Shown piece after piece: positions 13,737 through 32,905 of a DNA stretch of 64,000 bases. The translations under genes and the position numbers were made by a program. The DNA comes from Sminthopsis crassicaudata (lineage: Eukaryota): NCBI RefSeq assembly GCF_048593235.1, contig NC_133618.1:653616361-653680360 (forward strand). Direction: 5' to 3'. The notes under the pieces were generated by a model. That model worked only from the letters and a program-made list of their open reading frames with translations. It did not search any database and was not told where the DNA came from. Position 1 is the stretch's first letter. Every line of letters begins with the position of its first letter.

Positions 13737-13957
13737 GAAGGATTCTTTACTCTTGCATGGGCTCCTATGGGAGACTAGACATTGGATTCTTCAGAATAAT
13801 ATAGGTTTTATATAGATCATAATTGAAGGAAATATTAAATTTCAGGTAGAGGTAAATGAAAATAAGATGTTATTTTTATCCATTAAAGTTCACAGAATTC
13901 CCTAAAATCTATCTACTAACCCTTTGGGGTTCATGGAATCCAAGGTAAGGATCCCTG
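13737..13957 (+). mobile_element. hAT-Charlie-like MITE (same family as 1726-1982)
   Basis: 'ttcagaataat', 'gaaaataagatgttattttt...aagttcacaga', end 'ggtaaggatccctg'. Confidence 0.55.
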
Positions 13958-15959
13958 AACCAGAGGCTCAGGAGTGAGAACCTTCAGGATATGGTAGTCA
14001 AGAGCTTGGTTAATTATGATACCCCTGTTTTTGACAAGTGGGTCCCCTGAACCTGTTATTATTCTGTGTGTCAGGATATATTGGATTGGTGAAGAAAAAC
14101 AGGGGTTTTAAAAAAATTTTGTATCATACCCAACTGGCTAAGAAGGAAGTTTCCAATAGAGAAGTTTCTGGACACAGAACATTCTAGAAAAGGGGAAAAG
14201 GGCCAAGAAGAATAAAGGGACATGTCTAAAACAGAGAATCTGTTGCATGAGGTGTCAGGGTTTCTGATCTAGGTTTTTCAGACTATCTCACAATCCTTTG
14301 GGGTTCCTTCACCCCTAAGAACATATCCCATTTTGTGTGTTCAGTTGTCCTGTAGGGACCCATCCAGGATCAGTTTCTACAGATGAATCACATATTTCCA
14401 TAATCTCAGAGTTAAAGGAACCATGAAGATCATCCTGTCCAAACTACAGTTGAACTCAAATCTTAATTATCACAAGTTTTGACAGACTCCTTGGGAGAGG
14501 GTTCATGTTTCCTCTGGAGGCAACCCATTAAACATTTGGTCACTTCAGCTTACTAAAATTTTATCAAGGTATCCATCAGATTTTTTGAAATTGTGCTGGT
14601 AAGAACCAAAGCTGTGTTTCTAATTAATATTCTTAGTTCAGTTTGCACAAAGTACTTTTTTTTTTTTTTTTTTTCAAAAACAGTATTCAACAATAGGCAC
14701 GACTTGCTACTATTTGTCTGCCAGAATCCAGGATCTCCATGGACTTCAATAATACCAAAAAGCTTCTGTCTAATGTGACATTATTAAAGTGGGTTTTATT
14801 GTCAGCCTAGCAAAACTTACAATTTAATTTTAGGTTATGTGTAATTTTTATTAATACAATATGCATCTGTTAAAATAACTTTGGATAATGAAATATTTGA
14901 TTAAACAGACCTTCTTAATACAACTATTAACTGGTAAGATTTTGGGGGTTAGTTTAGCTTTGTTTTTCATTTGTGCATTCCAAGCTGAGCCTGATAAGAT
15001 GGCCTGAGGTGTGGAATGTTAATGGCAGGATCCTGGATGGTTTGTTTATTTTTTATTTATTTATCAAATGTGTTGCTCCAGGAGAAGTGCCAGATGGGGG
15101 CCTAGAAGTCAGAAGGACTCTGTTTGGCCCTGGAGCACCAATAAACTGGCAGAAAGGCCTCTCCCCAAGCTAGAGGTATACCTTCCAAGAGCTGTACCAG
15201 CCCTATGGTGTAGGCAGATTGCCTTCTCTTTGAGGGTTCCTGAGAAAAGTGCTGAGCAGAGTGGGTGTTTAATGAGAGCTACAAGGAAGCCTTTTGAGAA
15301 GTTTTTTTTGGTTCCTTTTTAAGAGAGAATAATTTTTCTGAGTTGTCTTTCTTTTTCATGGTTCTGGGAGAAATTTATAGGTGGATGAGGCTAGATTCAA
15401 TTGAATCCATTTATAGTATTATTTAGAAGAACAACTTGTGATAGGCAGTGGGCCATCTTAGTCTATTGGGTTTTGAGACTAGTACTGACACCCGAATTCT
15501 CATACAGGGAGAGAATGTGGAGCCTTCTGGCTTTATTCCCTTTGTGCCAGCCCTTCTTCAATGTCTAGTGAGTTGTGATATCTCTCTGGTTCTTAGCACA
15601 GCTGCCTGAAGGGCTGGTCAGTCTGAATGGCTCAGTTTCTCTGAGCACAACTGAACTCTTCCTGACTTGAAATCTGTCTGCTACTGATTCAGTAGCACTC
15701 GGTATTGATCATTGATAACTTTCCTAAGCATTCCCTATTGGTAAGGATTATGAGTTTTATAATCTCATTGATTACATTCTATTTTCTTTATTAGATGATA
15801 AGCCTCAGAGCTCAAGAATGACTTCTGTCCTTTACTCTGAACTCTAGCATTAGTCACACTGCCCAGTTCCCTTTGTACCTTAAAAAAATTATTATCTGGT
15901 AGACAGACTGGACACAGACCATCCCCTCATTTCTTCTGGACCATTTTCCTTTAGCCATA

Positions 15960-25980: not shown

Positions 25981-26170
25981 TATTAGGTCTGTATCCCAAG
26001 GAAATCAAAAAGGAGGGAAAAGGATACATGTATGCAAAAATGTTTGTCACAGCTCTTAATTCTAGTGGCAAAGAATTGGAAAATTAGTAGATGTCCATCA
26101 ATTGGGGAATGACTGAATAAGTTATGGTATATGAAGGTACTAGATTATTATTCCATAAAAAAAAATTATG
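25981..26170 (+). mobile_element. 5'-truncated host L1, piece 1
   Basis: Homologous to 32250-32430 of the young L1; resumes at 32906. Confidence 0.8.
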
Positions 26171-27034
26171 GGGGCGGAGCCAAGATGGCGGAGAGGAAAC
26201 ACACGACTCCGTGAACGTCCTCACTCCCTCACAACCAATTAGATAAATTAAGTCTCAAAATTAGCTCAGGATTGATAGATACCACAAGGACTGGAAGCAC
26301 GACTTACCAGCTGAAGAGAATCTGGAGTTTCAACAGGAAAGGTCAGTTCTCAGGGGAGGAATAAGAAAGACCAGCACAGACGGTGGGGTAGGGGCACACT
26401 GCGCCCATTGCGCTGGGAGGGGCTCTGGGATCAGAGAAGCCACTGAGGTAAAGGAATCTGGCACAGGCTGTTAGCTCTTCTCTGCTAATTATTTAGCAGT
26501 TCAGAAGAGAAAGCCAAAATATTTTAAAACTCAGATTAGATTTTCCCCGGACCCTGGGGGTGACTCAGGCACCAGGGGGTGTGGCCTCAGCTACCTCCTG
26601 AGAATAGTTAAGAGACTGACAAGTGGGTGGATACGGCCCAAGGCAACACACACTGCCTAACTTAGCTGGAGGGAGTGGAACTCAGCTCCAGGAAGTCCCA
26701 GAGAAGCGGAACCTTTGAACTAGGGACCGCGGTTTCTGGCAGACACTTCCAGTTTGAGCGCAGGGGCTTCTTACGTCACCTGCTGCAGACACCCACTCCC
26801 CACCCGGACACATAGCCTGAGCTTCCTGCAGTCTTCACTATTCTACGCCCTCAAAGCACAGCAGTGCTAATCACCTCTGAGGCACTCCCAGGGAGAGGGT
26901 GGGGAACTCTCTCCCAGAGCTCTCTCTTAGCTCAGGCTCAGGAGCCGCTGCATCCATCCCATCTGGGAGGAAGCTGGTAAAGAAGTAAATAATTTCCTAC
27001 CCCAGAGACAGACCCCAAAAGATTTTTTTTAAGT
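26171..27034 (+). promoter_or_regulatory. L1 5'UTR internal promoter
   Basis: Starts GGGGCGGAGC (Sp1-like) then CAAGATGGCGG 26181-26191 (YY1 site typical of L1 5' ends); CpG-rich. Confidence 0.85.
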
Positions 27035-28197
27035 ATGAGCAAAAAAGCTAGAAAAACCATAGATTCCTTCTATACAGAGAAAGAGCGGGTATCCAACCCC
27101 GAGGAAGTTAACAGCAAAGATTCAGAAGATAACAACCTAAAGGGGAACGATTCCTGCCCCCCATCACATAACTCTCTCCTAGAAGAAGCTCTTAAGAAAT
27201 TGAGGGAGATCGAAGAAAAATGGGGCAAGGAAAGGGAAGTTATGATAGAGAATAATAATGTCCTGAAATTGGAGTTGGAAAAAATAAAGAATTCACAGGA
27301 GATGCAGGGAAACAAAATTAGTGAATTAGAAAAGGTTAAAAAAACACAGGAAAGTAGGATATCTGAATTGGAAAAGATAAAAAAGTCTCAAGAAAATAGA
27401 ATTTCTGAATTGGAAAAAGAAAATAATTCTCAAAAAAAAAAATTAGGGAAATGGAAAAAAACTCAATAGAGCAAAATAATTCATTTAAAAACGAAATTGG
27501 GCATTTACAAAAAGAACTAAAAACTGTGAAAGAAGAAAATAACTCCTTAAAAGTCAGGATGGAACAAATAGAAATGAATGATTCACAGAGAACCCAAGAA
27601 TCAGTCAAACAAAACAAAAAAAATGAGAAGCTGGAGAACAACGTCAAATACTTACTGGGAAAATCTATAGACCTGGAAAATAGATCTAGGAGAGATAATC
27701 TGCGGATTATTGGACTTCCAGAAAACTATGACCAAAAAAAGAGCCTAGATTCTATTTTACAGGAAATTATCAAAGAGAACTGTCCAGAGATAATAGAAAC
27801 AGAAGGGAAAGTAGATGTGGAAAGAATTCATCGAACTCCTTCTGAAATAGACCCTAAAAAAAGAACACCACGAAATATTGTGGCTAAGCTGCAGAATTAC
27901 CACACAAAGGAGAAAATCCTGCAAGCAGCTAGAAAAAAACAATTTAAATACCAAGGTGCCACAATAAGGGTCACCCAAGATCTGGCTGCCTCCACATTAA
28001 AAGATAGAAGGGCCTGGAACCTGATATTCCGAAAGGCAAAAGATCAAGGACTGCAACCAAGAATGAACTACCCAGCTAAGTTTAGCATCTTTTTCCATGG
28101 AAGAAGATGGTCATTCAATGAAACAGAGGAATTCTATATGTTTCTAAGAAAAAAACCAGACTTAAACAAAAAATTTGATCTACATCCACAAGACTGA
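27035..28197 (+). CDS. ORF1p: L1 ORF1p (coiled coil, RRM, CTD), one frameshift in A11 at 27432-27442
   Basis: ORFs 27035-27469 and 27451-28197 join if one A is added (387 aa); motifs RRDNLRIIGLPE, ERIHR, DRRAW, YPAKFS. Confidence 0.93.
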
Positions 28198-28714
28198 AGA
28201 GAAACAGAAAAAGGTACACAGAACCCTTGAGAACTGTAACTTTGTTGTGGGTATATAAAAAATACTCAAGGATAATTTGATTTTACTGATATAAAAGAAA
28301 AAAAGGGGGGTGTGGTAAAGGGAAGGAGGTCGGTTCAGAAAAAGGGGAAGGAATGATAAAAAGAGGGAAACTACATCCCAGGAAGAGACATAGAAAATAC
28401 ACCATATCTGAGGGAACTTAGTGAGGGGGAGAATCATTGTGTGAATCTTACTCTCATCAGAAGAGGCTCAAAGAGTAAATAATTAACATATTTGTTTTTC
28501 AGAGAATTTTCTCTCACCTCATTAAAAGGGGGGAGAGGAAAAGGGGAAAGGAAAAGGAGAATAAGTGAAGGGACTTGGAGGGAGGGGGGAGGGATCCTAA
28601 AAAAAAAAAAAAAAAGAGGGAGGGTTGCGCGTCACAAGGGGGGTCTGTAAATTAAATATCGGGGAGGGGGATCAGGGGGGTCAAGGGAAAAAAGTATAAT
28701 CTGGGGATAATACG

Positions 28715-31700
28715 ATGGCAGGAAATACAGAATTAGTAATTTTAACTGTAAATGTAAATGGGATGAACGATCCCATCAAACGGAGACGGATAGCAGATTG
28801 GATCAAAAAGCAGAACCCTACAATATGTTGTCTACAGGAAACACACTTAAAGCAGGGAGATACATACAGAGTAAAGGTAAAAGGTTGGAACAGAGCTTAT
28901 TATGCTTCAGGTAAAGCCAAAAAAGCAGGGGTAGCTATCCTTATCTCAGATCAAGCAAAAGCAGAAGTAGATCTCGTTAAAAAAGATAAGGAAGGAAACT
29001 ATATCCTGCTGAAAGGTAGCATAAATAATGAAGCCATATCAATACTAAACATATATGCACCAAGTGGTATAGCATCTAACTTTCTAAAGGAAAAGTTAAG
29101 AGAACTGCAAGAAGAAATAGACAGTAAAACTATAATAGTGGGAGATCTCAACCTTGCACTCTCAGATTTAGACAAATCAAACCACAAAACAAACAAGAAA
29201 GAAATTAAAAAAGTAAATAGAACATTAGAAAAACTAGGTATGATAGACCTTTGGAGAAAACTGAATGGCAATAGGAAGGAATATACTTTCTTCTCAGCAG
29301 TTCATGGATCCTATACAAAAATTGACCATATATTAGGACATAAAGATCTCAAAATTAAATGTAGGAAGGCAGAAATAATAAATGCCTTCTTCTCAGATCA
29401 CAATGCAATAAAAGCTACATTCAGTAAAAAGTTAGGGGTAAATAGACCAAAAAGTAATTGGAAACTGAATAATCTCATCTTAAAGAATGACTGGGTGAAA
29501 GAGCAAATTATAGAAACAATTAACAATTTCACCCAAGATAATGATAATGATGAGACATCATATCAAAATCTTTGGGATGCAGCTAAAGCAGTAATAAGGG
29601 GAAATTTTATATCTTTAGAGGCTTATTTGAAGAAAATTGAGAAAGAGAAGATTAACGAATTGGGCTTACAACTTAAAAGGCTAGAAAAAGACCAAATTAT
29701 AAACCCCCAACCAAAAATTAAACTCGAAATACAAAAATTAAAAGGAGAAATCAATAAAATTGAAAGTAAAAAAACTATTGAATTAATAAATAAAACCAAG
29801 AGTTGGTTTTATGAAAAAGCCAATAAAATAGATAAACCTTTGGTAAATTTGATCAAAAAAAAGAAAGAGGAAAATCAAATTGATAGTCTTACAAATGAAA
29901 AGGGGGATCTTTCCACCAATGAAGAGGAAATTAGAGAAATAATAAGGAGTTACTTTGCCCAACTTTATGCCAATAAATTTGATAACTTAAGTGAAATGGA
30001 TGACTTTCTCCAAAAATATAGGCTCCCTAGATTAACAGAGGAGGAGATAAATTGCTTAAATAGTCCCATTTCAGAAAAAGAAATAGAACAAGCTATTAAT
30101 CAACTCCCCAGGAAAAAATCCCCAGGGCCAGATGGATTCACATGTGAATTCTACCAAACATTTAAAGAACAATTAGCCCCAATGTTATATAAATTATTTG
30201 AAAAAATAGGGGATGAAGGAGTCCTACCAAACTCCTTTTATGACACAGACATGGTACTGATACCTAAACCTGGTAGATCGAAAACTGAGAAAGAAAATTA
30301 TAGACCAATCTCCTTAATGAATATTGATGCTAAAATCTTAAATAAGATATTAGCAAAAAGACTTCAGAAAATCATCTCCAAGATAATACACTATGATCAA
30401 GTAGGATTTATTCCAGGAATGCAGGGCTGGTTTAATATTAGGAAAACTATTAATATAATTGACCATATTAATAATCAAATTAATAAGAACCATATGATCA
30501 TCTCAATAGATGCAGAAAAAGCATTTGACAAAATCCAACATCCATTCCTACTAAAAACTCTTGAGAGTATAGGAATAAATGGATTATTCCTTAGAATAAT
30601 CAGGAGTATATATTTAAGACCGTCAGTAAGCATAATATGCAATAGAAATAAACTGCAACCTTTCCCAGTAAGATCAGGAGTGAAACAAGGTTGCCCACTA
30701 TCACCATTACTATTCAATATAGTACTAGAAACGCTAGCCTCGGCAATAAGAGCCGAGAAAGAGATTCAAGGAATTAGAGTAGGAAATGAGGAAATCAAAC
30801 TATCACTTTTTGCAGATGACATGATGGTATACTTAGAGAACCCCAAAGACTCTGCTAAAAAGCTACTAGAAATAATTCAAAATTTCAGCAAAGTGGCAGG
30901 ATACAAAATAAATCCACATAAATCCTCGGCATTTTTATATATCACTAACAAAATGCAACAGCAAGAGATACAAAGAGAAATTCCATTCCAAACAAATGTT
31001 GAGAGTATAAAATATTTGGGAATCCATCTACCAAAGAAAAGTCAGGAATTATATGAGAAAAATTACAAAACACTTGCCACAAAAATAAAGTCAGATTTAA
31101 ATAATTGGAAAGACATTCAGTGCTCTTGGATAGGCCGAGCGAATATAATAAAGATGACAATACTCCCCAAACTAATCTATTTATTTAGTGCTATACCAAT
31201 CAGACTCCCAAGAAACTATTTTAATGACCTAGAAAAAATAACAACAAAATTCATATGGAAGAATAAAAGGTCAAGAATTGCAAGGGAACTAATGAAAAAA
31301 AAACTCAGAGGAAGGTGGTCTAAGTGTACCTGATCTAAAGCTATATTATATAGCAGCAGTCACCAAAACCATTTGGTATTGGCTACGAAATAGACCGGTA
31401 GATCAGTGGAACAGATTAGATACAAAGGACAAAAAAGGATACATCTATAGCAATCTAATCTTTGACAAACCCAAAGATTCCAACATTAGGGATAAAAATT
31501 CATTATTCGGAAAAAACTGTTGGGAAAACTGGAAATTAGTATGGCAGAAATTAGATATGGATCCACACTTAGCACCATATACCAAGATAAGATCAAAATG
31601 GGTCCATGATTTAGGCATAAAGAGGGAGATAATAAATAGATTAGAGGAACAGAGGATAATCTACCTCTCAGACTTGTGGAGGAGGAAGGAATTTATGACC

Positions 31701-32549
31701 AGAGGAGAACTAGAGATCATTATTGATCACAAAATAGAAGATTTTGATTACATCAAACTAAAAAGTTTCTGTACAAATAATACTAATGCAAACAAGATTA
31801 GAAGGGAAGTAACAAATTGGGAAAATATTTTTAAAAACAAAGGTTCTGACAAAGGTCTCATTTCCAAAATATATAGAGAACTGACCCAAATTTATAAGAA
31901 ACCGAACCATTCTCCAATTGATAAATGGTCAAAGGATATGAACAGACAATTCTCAGAGGAAGAAATTGAAACTATATCCACTCACATGAAAGAGTGTTCC
32001 AAATCACTACTGATCAGAGAAATGCAAATTAAGACCACTCTGAGATACCACTACACACCTGTCAGATTGGCTAAGATGACAGGAACAAATAATGACAAAT
32101 GTTGGAGGGGATGTGGGAAAACTGGGACACTAATACATTGCTGGTGGAGTTGTGAAAGAATCCAGCCATTCTGGAGAGCAATCTGGAATTATGCCCAAAA
32201 AGTTATCAAACTGTGCATACCCTTTGACCCAGCAGCGCTACTACTGGGATTATATCCCAAAGAAATACTAAAGAGCGGAAAGAGACATATATGTGCCAGA
32301 ATGTTTGTGGCGGCTCTTTTTGTTGTAGCTAGAAACTGGAGGATGAATGGATGTCCATCAGTTGGAGAATGGTTGGGTAAATTGTGGTATATGAAGGTTA
32401 TGGAATATTATTGCTCGGTAAGAAATGACCAACAGGAGGAATATAGAGAGGCCTGGAGAGACTTAAATCAACTGATGCTGAGTGAAATGAGCAGAACCAG
32501 AAGATCACTGTACACTTCAACAACAATGCTGTATGAGGATGTATTCTGA
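28715..32549 (+). CDS. ORF2p: L1 ORF2p (APE endonuclease, reverse transcriptase, CCHC), one frameshift in A9 at 31295-31303
   Basis: [40 protein letters not shown]; deleting one A gives an open 1277-aa frame (31305-31556 translated by hand, in frame with the 31557 ORF). Confidence 0.96.
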
Positions 32550-32905
32550 TGGAAGTGGAAATCTTCAACATAAAGAAGATCCAACTCACTTCCAGTTGAT
32601 CAATGATGGACAGAGGTAGCTGCACCCAGAGAAGAAACACTGGGAGGGGAATGAAAATTGTTAGCACTAATATCTGTCTGCCCAGGTTGCATGTACCTTC
32701 GGATTCTAATGTTTATTGTGCAACAAGAAAGTGATATTCGCACACATGTATTGTACCTAGACTATATTGTAACACATGTAAAATGTATGGTATTGCCTGT
32801 CGTCGGGGGGAGGGAATAGAGGGAGGGGGGGTAAATTGGAAAAATGAATACAAGGGATAATATTATAAAATATATATATATATATATAATAAAAAAAAAA
32901 TTATG

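Follow-up and report, generated by a model that had tools for sequence, protein, structure and literature searches.

What is a full-length LINE-1 whose two reading frames are each broken once, at a run of adenines: a working source element that was mis-assembled, a copy disabled very recently, or one that never functioned where it now lies? The question is raised by a 6.7-kb L1 on the + strand at positions 26170-32904 of the 64,000-nucleotide stretch of Sminthopsis crassicaudata DNA analysed here (the window), with a full 5'UTR, ORF1, a spacer, ORF2 and a 3'UTR between 13-bp target-site duplications (TSDs). The original prediction had left the first two answers side by side. The copy does prove very young, with no stops and a synonymous bias in ORF2, whereas mis-assembly is not needed to explain it. 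We favour, at a probability of about 0.6, a very young full-length L1 that came from an intact source and acquired real slippage lesions after insertion. We infer the reality and timing of these lesions, and also the absolute age, from the comparisons described below.

The limits of the element each lie one base away from those first proposed (26171-32905), as it starts at 26170 and its 3' TSD ends at 32904. The 5' TSD copy (A9TTAT, 26157-26169) sits in the 3' fragment of an older L1 ORF2 and is matched exactly over its 13 bp by the 3' copy (32892-32904). Together with AATAAA (32888-32893) and an A10 run at the 3' end, this duplication carries the hallmarks of target-primed reverse transcription, and the bottom strand of the target reads T9/AT, a TTTT/A-type cleavage site. 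The 865-bp 5'UTR (26170-27034) has a G run at its start, 19 CpGs and a YY1-type motif, CAAGATGGCGG, at 26181-26191. Its start was set from the sequence and from a sister copy, which begins no more than 3 nt from the same position behind a TSD of its own. The motif and the agreement between two copies with separate TSDs would fit a full-length 5'UTR, as had been proposed, with a putative internal promoter. The 3'UTR (32550-32891) contains a (TA)n stretch, and in the A10 run (32891-32900) the tail and the A run of the TSD are merged, leaving a tail of 1-10 A. For so young an insertion a tail of 10 A or fewer is unusually short; priming on the T9 of the target could explain it. No other copy of this L1 was found in the 64-kb window, which holds only old fragments at 72% identity; runs of N occupy 484-625 and 55149-55361.

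The element is a LINE-1, a non-LTR retrotransposon of the L1 clade, by its ORF1p, its ORF2p and its mode of insertion. ORF1 matches Pfam Transposase_22 (E 5e-15) and Tnp_22_dsRBD (dsRBD), and its product aligns to human ORF1p structures across the RRM and the C-terminal domain. ORF2 matches Exo_endo_phos and RVT_1, and its pieces align without gaps to the sequences of human ORF2p structures over residues 4-860 and 867-1265. Equivalents of endonuclease N14, E43, D145, N147, D205 and H230 are kept, as are FADD and the CCHC knuckle; the Pfam matches and the human alignment together bear out the claim that all endonuclease, reverse transcriptase and CCHC motifs are preserved. Human L1 (PDB 8sxt, 8uw3, 1vyb, 2yko), which is ~55% identical in ORF2 and less so in ORF1, conserves the same catalytic endonuclease residues, FADD and CCHC, whereas the window copy has both ORFs out of frame. 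Outside the two A runs the element looks functional, as far as its sequence indicates. The purine-rich spacer between the ORFs (28198-28714) contains an A17 run at 28599-28615, which is A21 in the sister copy. This spacer is 517 bp long, and that of human L1 is far shorter, at 63 bp.

ORF1 is open at 27035-27466 in one frame and at 27427-28194 in the -1 frame; ORF2 is open at 28715-31330 and then at 31296-32546 in the +1 frame. The first ORF1 piece (27035-27469, 144 codons) encodes the N-terminus and coiled coil and ends past the A run at a stop that lies out of frame, and the second (27442-28197) encodes the remaining coiled coil, the RRM and the C-terminal domain, with 98% identity to S. crassicaudata LOC141555273. 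Within the first ORF2 piece (28715-31333, 872 codons), which extends through the thumb, lie the endonuclease (~28742-29401) and the reverse transcriptase (~30260-31030); the second (31305-32549, with its stop at 32547-32549) covers the wrist and C-terminal domain, including the CCHC knuckle at 32100-32153. No further stop occurs in any of the four pieces (4971 coding nt), in agreement with the reported lack of independent nonsense codons. The overlap at the ORF1 frame change (27427-27467) holds A11 (27432-27442, a -1 change) and that at the ORF2 frame change (31296-31331) holds A9 (31295-31303, a +1 change), the latter corresponding by alignment to human ORF2p residues ~861-866. These are the two longest homopolymers in the coding sequence. 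As assembled, each ORF is interrupted by one frame change, and the copy as written in DNA is not autonomous: its only possible products are a 144-residue ORF1 fragment and an 872-residue endonuclease-reverse transcriptase protein that lacks the C-terminal third. Exact matches to the four pieces were not found in the protein collection or the contig index, which therefore gave no independent sequencing of the A11 or A9 alleles.

That A11 and A9 are the only lesions is supported by the sister copy, which was reached through the best ORF1p match (98%, an annotated S. crassicaudata protein) and lies at LOC141555273 (GCA_048593235.1, CM109181.1:541.71 Mb, ~7126-14902 of our locus L001). It belongs to the same family, sharing the 5'UTR with its YY1 motif, a ~520 bp spacer that includes a long A run, and a 3' end of the form (TA)n-AATAAA, and has a 387-codon ORF1 and an ORF2 of ~1278 codons. 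The two copies are 98.1% identical overall (1.94% difference). At both runs the sister is in frame, with A12 in ORF1 (reading SQKKKIREMEK) and A8 in ORF2 (reading MKKNSEEGG), and the only coding indels between the copies are these two and a 4-bp duplication in the sister. The A7 run at 27455-27461 lies in the same ORF1 overlap, but we rejected it as the site of the slip: when the copies are aligned, the one indel falls within A11/A12. The sister's ORF1 is intact and is annotated by NCBI as a 387-residue protein. Its ORF2, unlike that of the window copy, carries a nested 1-kb L1 3' fragment and, near the C-terminus, the 4-bp duplication; its A tail is ~30 nt long, against at most 10 A here. Amino-acid and CpG differences are derived more often on the sister side. 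Word searches with the ORF2 pieces gave no dunnart ORF2 proteins among their returns.

How long ago the window copy inserted can be approached from the nature of these differences. In ORF2, 17 of 46 are nonsynonymous, against a neutral expectation of 70-80% (pN/pS 0.14; P 2e-10 to 3e-6, and no higher than 6e-6 in any mutation model tried); the ORF1 ratio is 0.32, which is not significant when transition bias is allowed (P ~0.15). Because the ORF2 differences are mostly synonymous, most of the divergence arose on active lineages, before insertion. The two copies document a dunnart-specific L1 lineage in which purifying selection acted on ORF2 until very recently. Of the five amino-acid differences in the endonuclease and reverse transcriptase, four are changes derived on the sister's side, and none can clearly be assigned to the window copy. 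The unmutated CpGs described earlier in ORF2 number 22, out of 26 CpG positions found in either copy, and candidate CpG losses are 6 in the window copy compared with 13 in the sister. The absence of stops in 4971 coding nt places a 95% upper bound of 1.0-1.5% on decay; this bound and the selection-shaped ORF2 differences rule out an old copy spared stops by luck. We estimate decay since insertion at ~0.2% on the window copy, derived from a neutral component of ~0.4-0.6% summed over both copies. On this basis, two copies compared with outgroup proteins, insertion would date to ~1 million years ago, a figure with a wide margin of error.

At an assumed rate of ~1 indel per eight substitutions, ~0.2% decay predicts about one indel in 5 kb, and ~1-2 real indels would be expected at this age. 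As long A runs are the usual sites of such changes, real slippage lesions are the most likely explanation. The history that we favour would begin with a source element that had working ORF1p and ORF2p, from which target-primed reverse transcription would have placed this copy at a T-rich site of the older L1 fragment, creating the 13-bp TSD. After insertion, replication slippage would have altered the two longest coding A runs by one base each, so that ORF1 is cut within the coiled coil and ORF2 where the thumb meets the wrist, before the CCHC domain. The element is an ordinary near-intact L1, such as is expected around any active family.

The ORF2 run has broken elsewhere. Tasmanian devil L1 (Sarcophilus harrisii A0A7N4UZ13 and A0A7N4P7Z2; ORF1 P0122-P0124) has the same domain order and a lysine/A run in the same position of ORF2. 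Amino-acid identity between the devil proteins and the window copy is 82-86% in ORF2 and 75-81% in ORF1, compared with 98% for the dunnart ORF1p match. On these identities we rejected the devil as the origin of the window; its L1 is a separate, species-specific lineage, as predicted by the clustering of Gallus 2016. L1 of the opossum (Monodelphis domestica A0A5F8H9U4, A0A5F8GQ42 and others), which belongs to a different marsupial order, is 72% identical in ORF2. Opossum copies that are in frame have MKKN at this run, whereas two independent proteins (P0003 and P0004) are frameshifted exactly there, as is one from the devil assembly (P0001); P0002, P0005 and P0234 are in frame through it. Frameshifts recur at this run across three marsupial species.

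Homopolymers of 9-12 bases are also where long-read assemblies most commonly carry consensus errors, and the length of one or both runs could be such an error, in which case the real locus would hold an intact, potentially competent L1. Each lesion is a one-base length change, the runs concerned are the longest two homopolymers of the coding sequence and nothing else is wrong, and the endonuclease/reverse transcriptase part of ORF2 has no clearly derived replacement, as would suit an intact element. Additionally, four of the six internal runs of at least 8 bases differ in length from the sister, which either miscalls or biology could produce. Published dunnart assemblies include one made from ONT reads only and another made with Flye and Pilon polishing, which performs poorly inside repeats; for GCA_048593235.1 itself, a search of the literature for the sequencing technology found only papers that use the assembly. 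However, two independent errors would have to fall in one 6.7-kb element, and the sister, probably in the same assembly, has both runs in frame and an ORF1 annotated as intact. The 1-2 real indels expected at the estimated age tell against error as well, as do the opossum proteins frameshifted at the same ORF2 run, which come from what we presume, by their accession series, to be a Sanger assembly and indicate that real slippage is common there. We consider an assembly artefact unlikely, if worth taking seriously.

Real slips need not postdate insertion. They could have arisen when an intact source was transcribed, through RNA polymerase II slippage, or when its RNA was reverse transcribed; the copy would then never have functioned at this site. 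A runs of at least 9 bases are sites of RNA polymerase II slippage in vivo: from a human DMD allele with A9, transcripts gain one A and yield ~15% protein (PMC12946587). The recurrence of frameshifts at the ORF2 run in three marsupial species would also fit a process that acts in every replication cycle, but a single copy cannot separate it from replication slippage after insertion. Two slips in one event would have the product of two small probabilities, and ORF1p and ORF2p prefer their own RNA in cis, so an RNA bearing the two slips would depend on proteins provided in trans. We regard this course of events as quite improbable and retain slippage after insertion as the preferred reading.

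Slips might also restore the frame. If transcripts slipped or ribosomes slid at the two runs alike, a few RNAs might be read in frame, and the copy would be a leaky source of occasional daughters, some possibly in frame. In human muscle the frame is restored at A9-A10 (PMC12946587), and ribosomes have been shown to slide on A tracts (PMC4363877, PMC5263891); on this precedent leakage or reversion by slippage at the two runs, as first suggested, is plausible. Both events would have to meet on one RNA, however, and the productive fraction would be the product of two minor fractions; we consider active leakage from this copy very improbable. A broader form is that long coding A runs serve as reversible switches. 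L1 RNA is translated and also serves as the template for new copies, so polymerase slippage at the two runs could produce transcripts from which both proteins are made in cis and which hand in-frame lengths on to daughters. We think this very improbable as well; if true, copies like this one would be cryptic low-output sources, not dead ends, and counts of 'intact' elements based on PCR or ORFs would underestimate the potential dasyurid sources.

The selection seen between the two copies argues for L1 activity in the dunnart as recently as roughly one to a few million years ago, to the extent that divergence between two copies can date it. The scarcity of intact L1s in early dasyurid assemblies, which the original prediction had mentioned, is documented (Gallus 2015/2016; PMC4408412, PMC5010896): in a PCR survey of the dunnart 2 of 100 ORF2 clones were open, and independent silencing of L1 in dasyurid lineages was proposed (PMC5010896). 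In the opossum, 35 of 100 clones were intact and many intact copies are known (Gallus 2016). Somatic activity in a devil transmissible cancer, also mentioned correctly, was reported by Stammnitz et al., who identified 35 source elements and found L1 active and mobile in DFT2, a tumour of the devil (10.1101/2022.05.27.493404); recent activity in the dunnart would agree with this later evidence of mobility. The ORF2 A run falls within the survey amplicon (30806-31421 of the window). As it is also a recurrent frameshift site, counts of 'intact' L1s are sensitive, biologically and technically, to the length of one homopolymer.

One complete L1 occupies 26170-32904 on the forward strand, an ordinary, very young, broken member of a recently active dunnart lineage. 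Sequence and a three-frame stop map give its layout: a G-rich 5′ end, then a YY1-type motif (CAAGATGGCGG, 26181-26191), in a 5′UTR of 865 bp; ORF1 (27035-28197); a purine-rich spacer (28198-28714); ORF2 (28715-32549); and a 3′UTR with a (TA)n stretch, AATAAA (32888-32893) and, after it, an A10 run. The TSD, A9TTAT, is exact over 13 bases on both flanks (26157-26169 and 32892-32904), and the originally predicted span of 26171-32905 sets each boundary one base too late. The insertion site is an older L1 ORF2 3′ fragment, which continues on both flanks. As the A tail is inseparable from the A9 of the TSD (32891-32904) and the total run is just 10 A, the tail measures 1-10 A, a shortness consistent with the T9 run of the target itself having served as primer. 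The window's two N runs, 484-625 (142 bases) and 55149-55361 (213 bases), both lie far from the L1.

The ORFs of this window copy consist of four open pieces and nothing else, in agreement with the claim in the original prediction that independent nonsense codons are absent. On the forward strand, ORF1 is open at 27035-27466 and then, in the -1 frame, at 27427-28194; ORF2 is open at 28715-31330 and then, in the +1 frame, at 31296-32546. A frame change is possible only within 27427-27467 in ORF1 and 31296-31331 in ORF2, and these overlaps are occupied by the two longest coding homopolymers, A11 (27432-27442) and A9 (31295-31303).

The second ORF1 piece shares 98% identity with the S. crassicaudata "uncharacterized protein LOC141555273" (NCBI), an intact ORF1p of 387 residues, whereas devil ORF1 proteins are only 75-81% identical to the window copy and devil ORF2 proteins at best 86%. 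These identities make the host a dunnart rather than the devil, in line with the dasyurid origin assumed in the original prediction. Contig look-up for LOC141555273 led to locus L001 (GCA_048593235.1, CM109181.1:541,712,198-541,729,361), which holds a full-length sister L1. At the same two sites the sister carries A12 and A8, in frame (SQKKKIREMEK and MKKNSEEGG), and coding indels between the two elements are limited to A11/A12, A9/A8 and a 4-bp duplication close to the end of the sister's ORF2. Since the sister differs by a single A at each run, the predicted lesions, one A short in ORF1 and one A extra in ORF2, are confirmed. The 5′ ends of the two copies agree within 3 nt, supporting the view that both are full length, as had been predicted for the window copy. 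The sister has its own TSD of ~16 bp, an A tail of ~30 nt with two G interruptions and an ORF2 split by a nested 1-kb L1 3′ fragment. That fragment (L001 10350-11346) is a 5′-truncated L1 3′ end, 81% identical to the young family, and its ends carry A22 runs together with ORF2 sequence duplicated over 15 bp; the entire sister element sits within a gene model that lies on the opposite strand and has F-box and LRR domains. At 517 bp the spacer between ORF1 and ORF2 is of unusual length, and it includes a long A run, A17 at 28599-28615 in the window copy and A21 in L001 (9566-9586).

With each ORF analysed as separate pieces, ORF1 matched Transposase_22 and a dsRBD-like domain in Pfam, its RRM and C-terminal domain being alignable to 2yko, and ORF2 matched Exo_endo_phos and RVT_1. 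Solved human ORF2p (8sxt, 8uw3) gives gap-free alignments with the first ORF2 piece over residues 4-860 and with the second over 867-1265, so the ORF2 break falls at the thumb/wrist junction. The same comparison shows that the endonuclease has kept its catalytic residues and that FADD and the CCHC knuckle (32100-32153) are still present, matching the motif inventory of the original prediction. Among the database proteins, P0128, P0269 and P0275 are L1 ORF1p- or ORF2p-like records filed under a Bacteroidales MAG, Trypanosoma congolense and a fungus (Entrophospora), most likely through host or mammalian DNA contamination.

Aligned over 6699 sites, the two copies show 130 differences (1.94%); divergence is 4.3% in the 5′UTR, 2.3% in ORF1 and 1.2% in ORF2. 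Of the 46 ORF2 differences, just 17 are nonsynonymous (pN/pS 0.14), whereas under neutrality 69-80% would be expected, whether or not the mutation model includes strong transition and CpG bias (P 6e-6 to 2e-10); this deficit implies that most ORF2 divergence arose under selection for function, on active elements. The ORF1 ratio, 0.32, gave no significant selection signal after transition bias was included. Treating the ORF2 counts as a mixture of a neutral class (70% nonsynonymous) and a selected class, our own arithmetic puts neutral change at ~0.4-0.6% summed over both copies. Three observations suggest that the window copy carries the smaller share: when devil, opossum and eutherian proteins serve as outgroups, four of five endonuclease/RT replacements prove to be derived on the sister's side and none clearly on that of the window copy; candidate CpG-to-TpG/CpA losses number 6 in the window copy versus 13 in the sister; and, because stops would result from 3.9-5.9% of the substitutions possible in these ORFs, zero stops in 4971 nt limits post-insertion decay to at most 1.0-1.5% (95%). 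We estimate its decay at about 0.2%, and hence, at a generic mammalian neutral rate rather than a dunnart-specific one, its age at the order of a million years.

At ~0.2% decay, 5 kb should hold ~10 substitutions, ~0.5 stops and ~one indel, assuming roughly one indel per eight substitutions; extended homopolymers, moreover, have mutation rates well above the sequence average. Ordinary decay therefore leads one to expect this picture, a one-base slip in each of the two longest A runs of the coding sequence and zero stops, so that no artefact need be invoked. We therefore favour, at a probability of roughly 0.6, real lesions that arose after insertion, each run probably having slipped by one base in the course of that decay. 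Slips during the retrotransposition event itself seem unlikely. The original prediction had offered mis-assembly or very recent inactivation, and it is the latter that we prefer; an artefact in at least one run length is improbable, though somewhat less so than slippage at retrotransposition. Homopolymer length is the typical consensus error of long-read assemblies, and other assemblies of the dunnart were made either from ONT data alone or with Flye plus Pilon, but both the indel expectation at the estimated age and a recurrent ORF2 breakpoint accord with real slips. The lysine/A run at 31295-31303 is a repeated frameshift site, here and in devil and opossum: frame is lost exactly there in the ORF2 proteins P0001 (devil) and P0003 and P0004 (opossum), the latter two differing by one lysine in their K runs, and several ~870-residue "ORF2" gene models terminate at it. 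Devil P0234 and two further L1 ORF2 proteins, P0002 and P0005, stay in frame through it. The ORF1 lysine run also varies among in-frame devil copies (KKK, KNK).

Low-level frame restoration at each run of the window copy is credible from precedent: transcripts from a human DMD allele containing an A9 run acquire an additional A, with a full-length protein yield of ~15% (PMC12946587), and ribosomes are slowed and slide on A-tracts of 9-12 bases (PMC4363877, PMC5263891). A locus still functional through RNA-level slippage would nevertheless require both restorations on one RNA, and we consider this very improbable. In its in-frame form, the family's ORF1 has 12 consecutive A's (L001 8398-8409; window counterpart 27432-27442). 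Tracts this long cut protein output and promote ribosome sliding in reporter studies, so the family may possess a built-in attenuator of ORF1p.

The original prediction correctly stated that intact L1s were scarce in early dasyurid assemblies and that L1 is somatically active in a devil transmissible cancer. The devil's short-read assembly yielded no functional L1 (Gallus et al. 2015, PMC4408412); a later survey, which reported species-specific clusters and called for better assemblies, recovered open ORF2 clones at 19/200 in devil, 14/100 in quoll and 2/100 in dunnart (Gallus et al. 2016, PMC5010896); and DFT2, a Tasmanian devil transmissible tumour, carries somatic L1 insertions in the hundreds, with 35 source elements identified (Stammnitz et al., 10.1101/2022.05.27.493404). 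The window copy is valuable chiefly because it provides evidence of recent dunnart L1 activity and illustrates a homopolymer hotspot. The 612-nt ORF2 amplicon of the 2016 survey maps to 30806-31421 and spans the A9 run, because of which alone this copy would have scored as degraded, and its primers, designed on devil sequence, mismatch this dunnart family at 2 and 3 positions; the A run and the primer mismatches could both depress the apparent intact-clone fraction in that survey.
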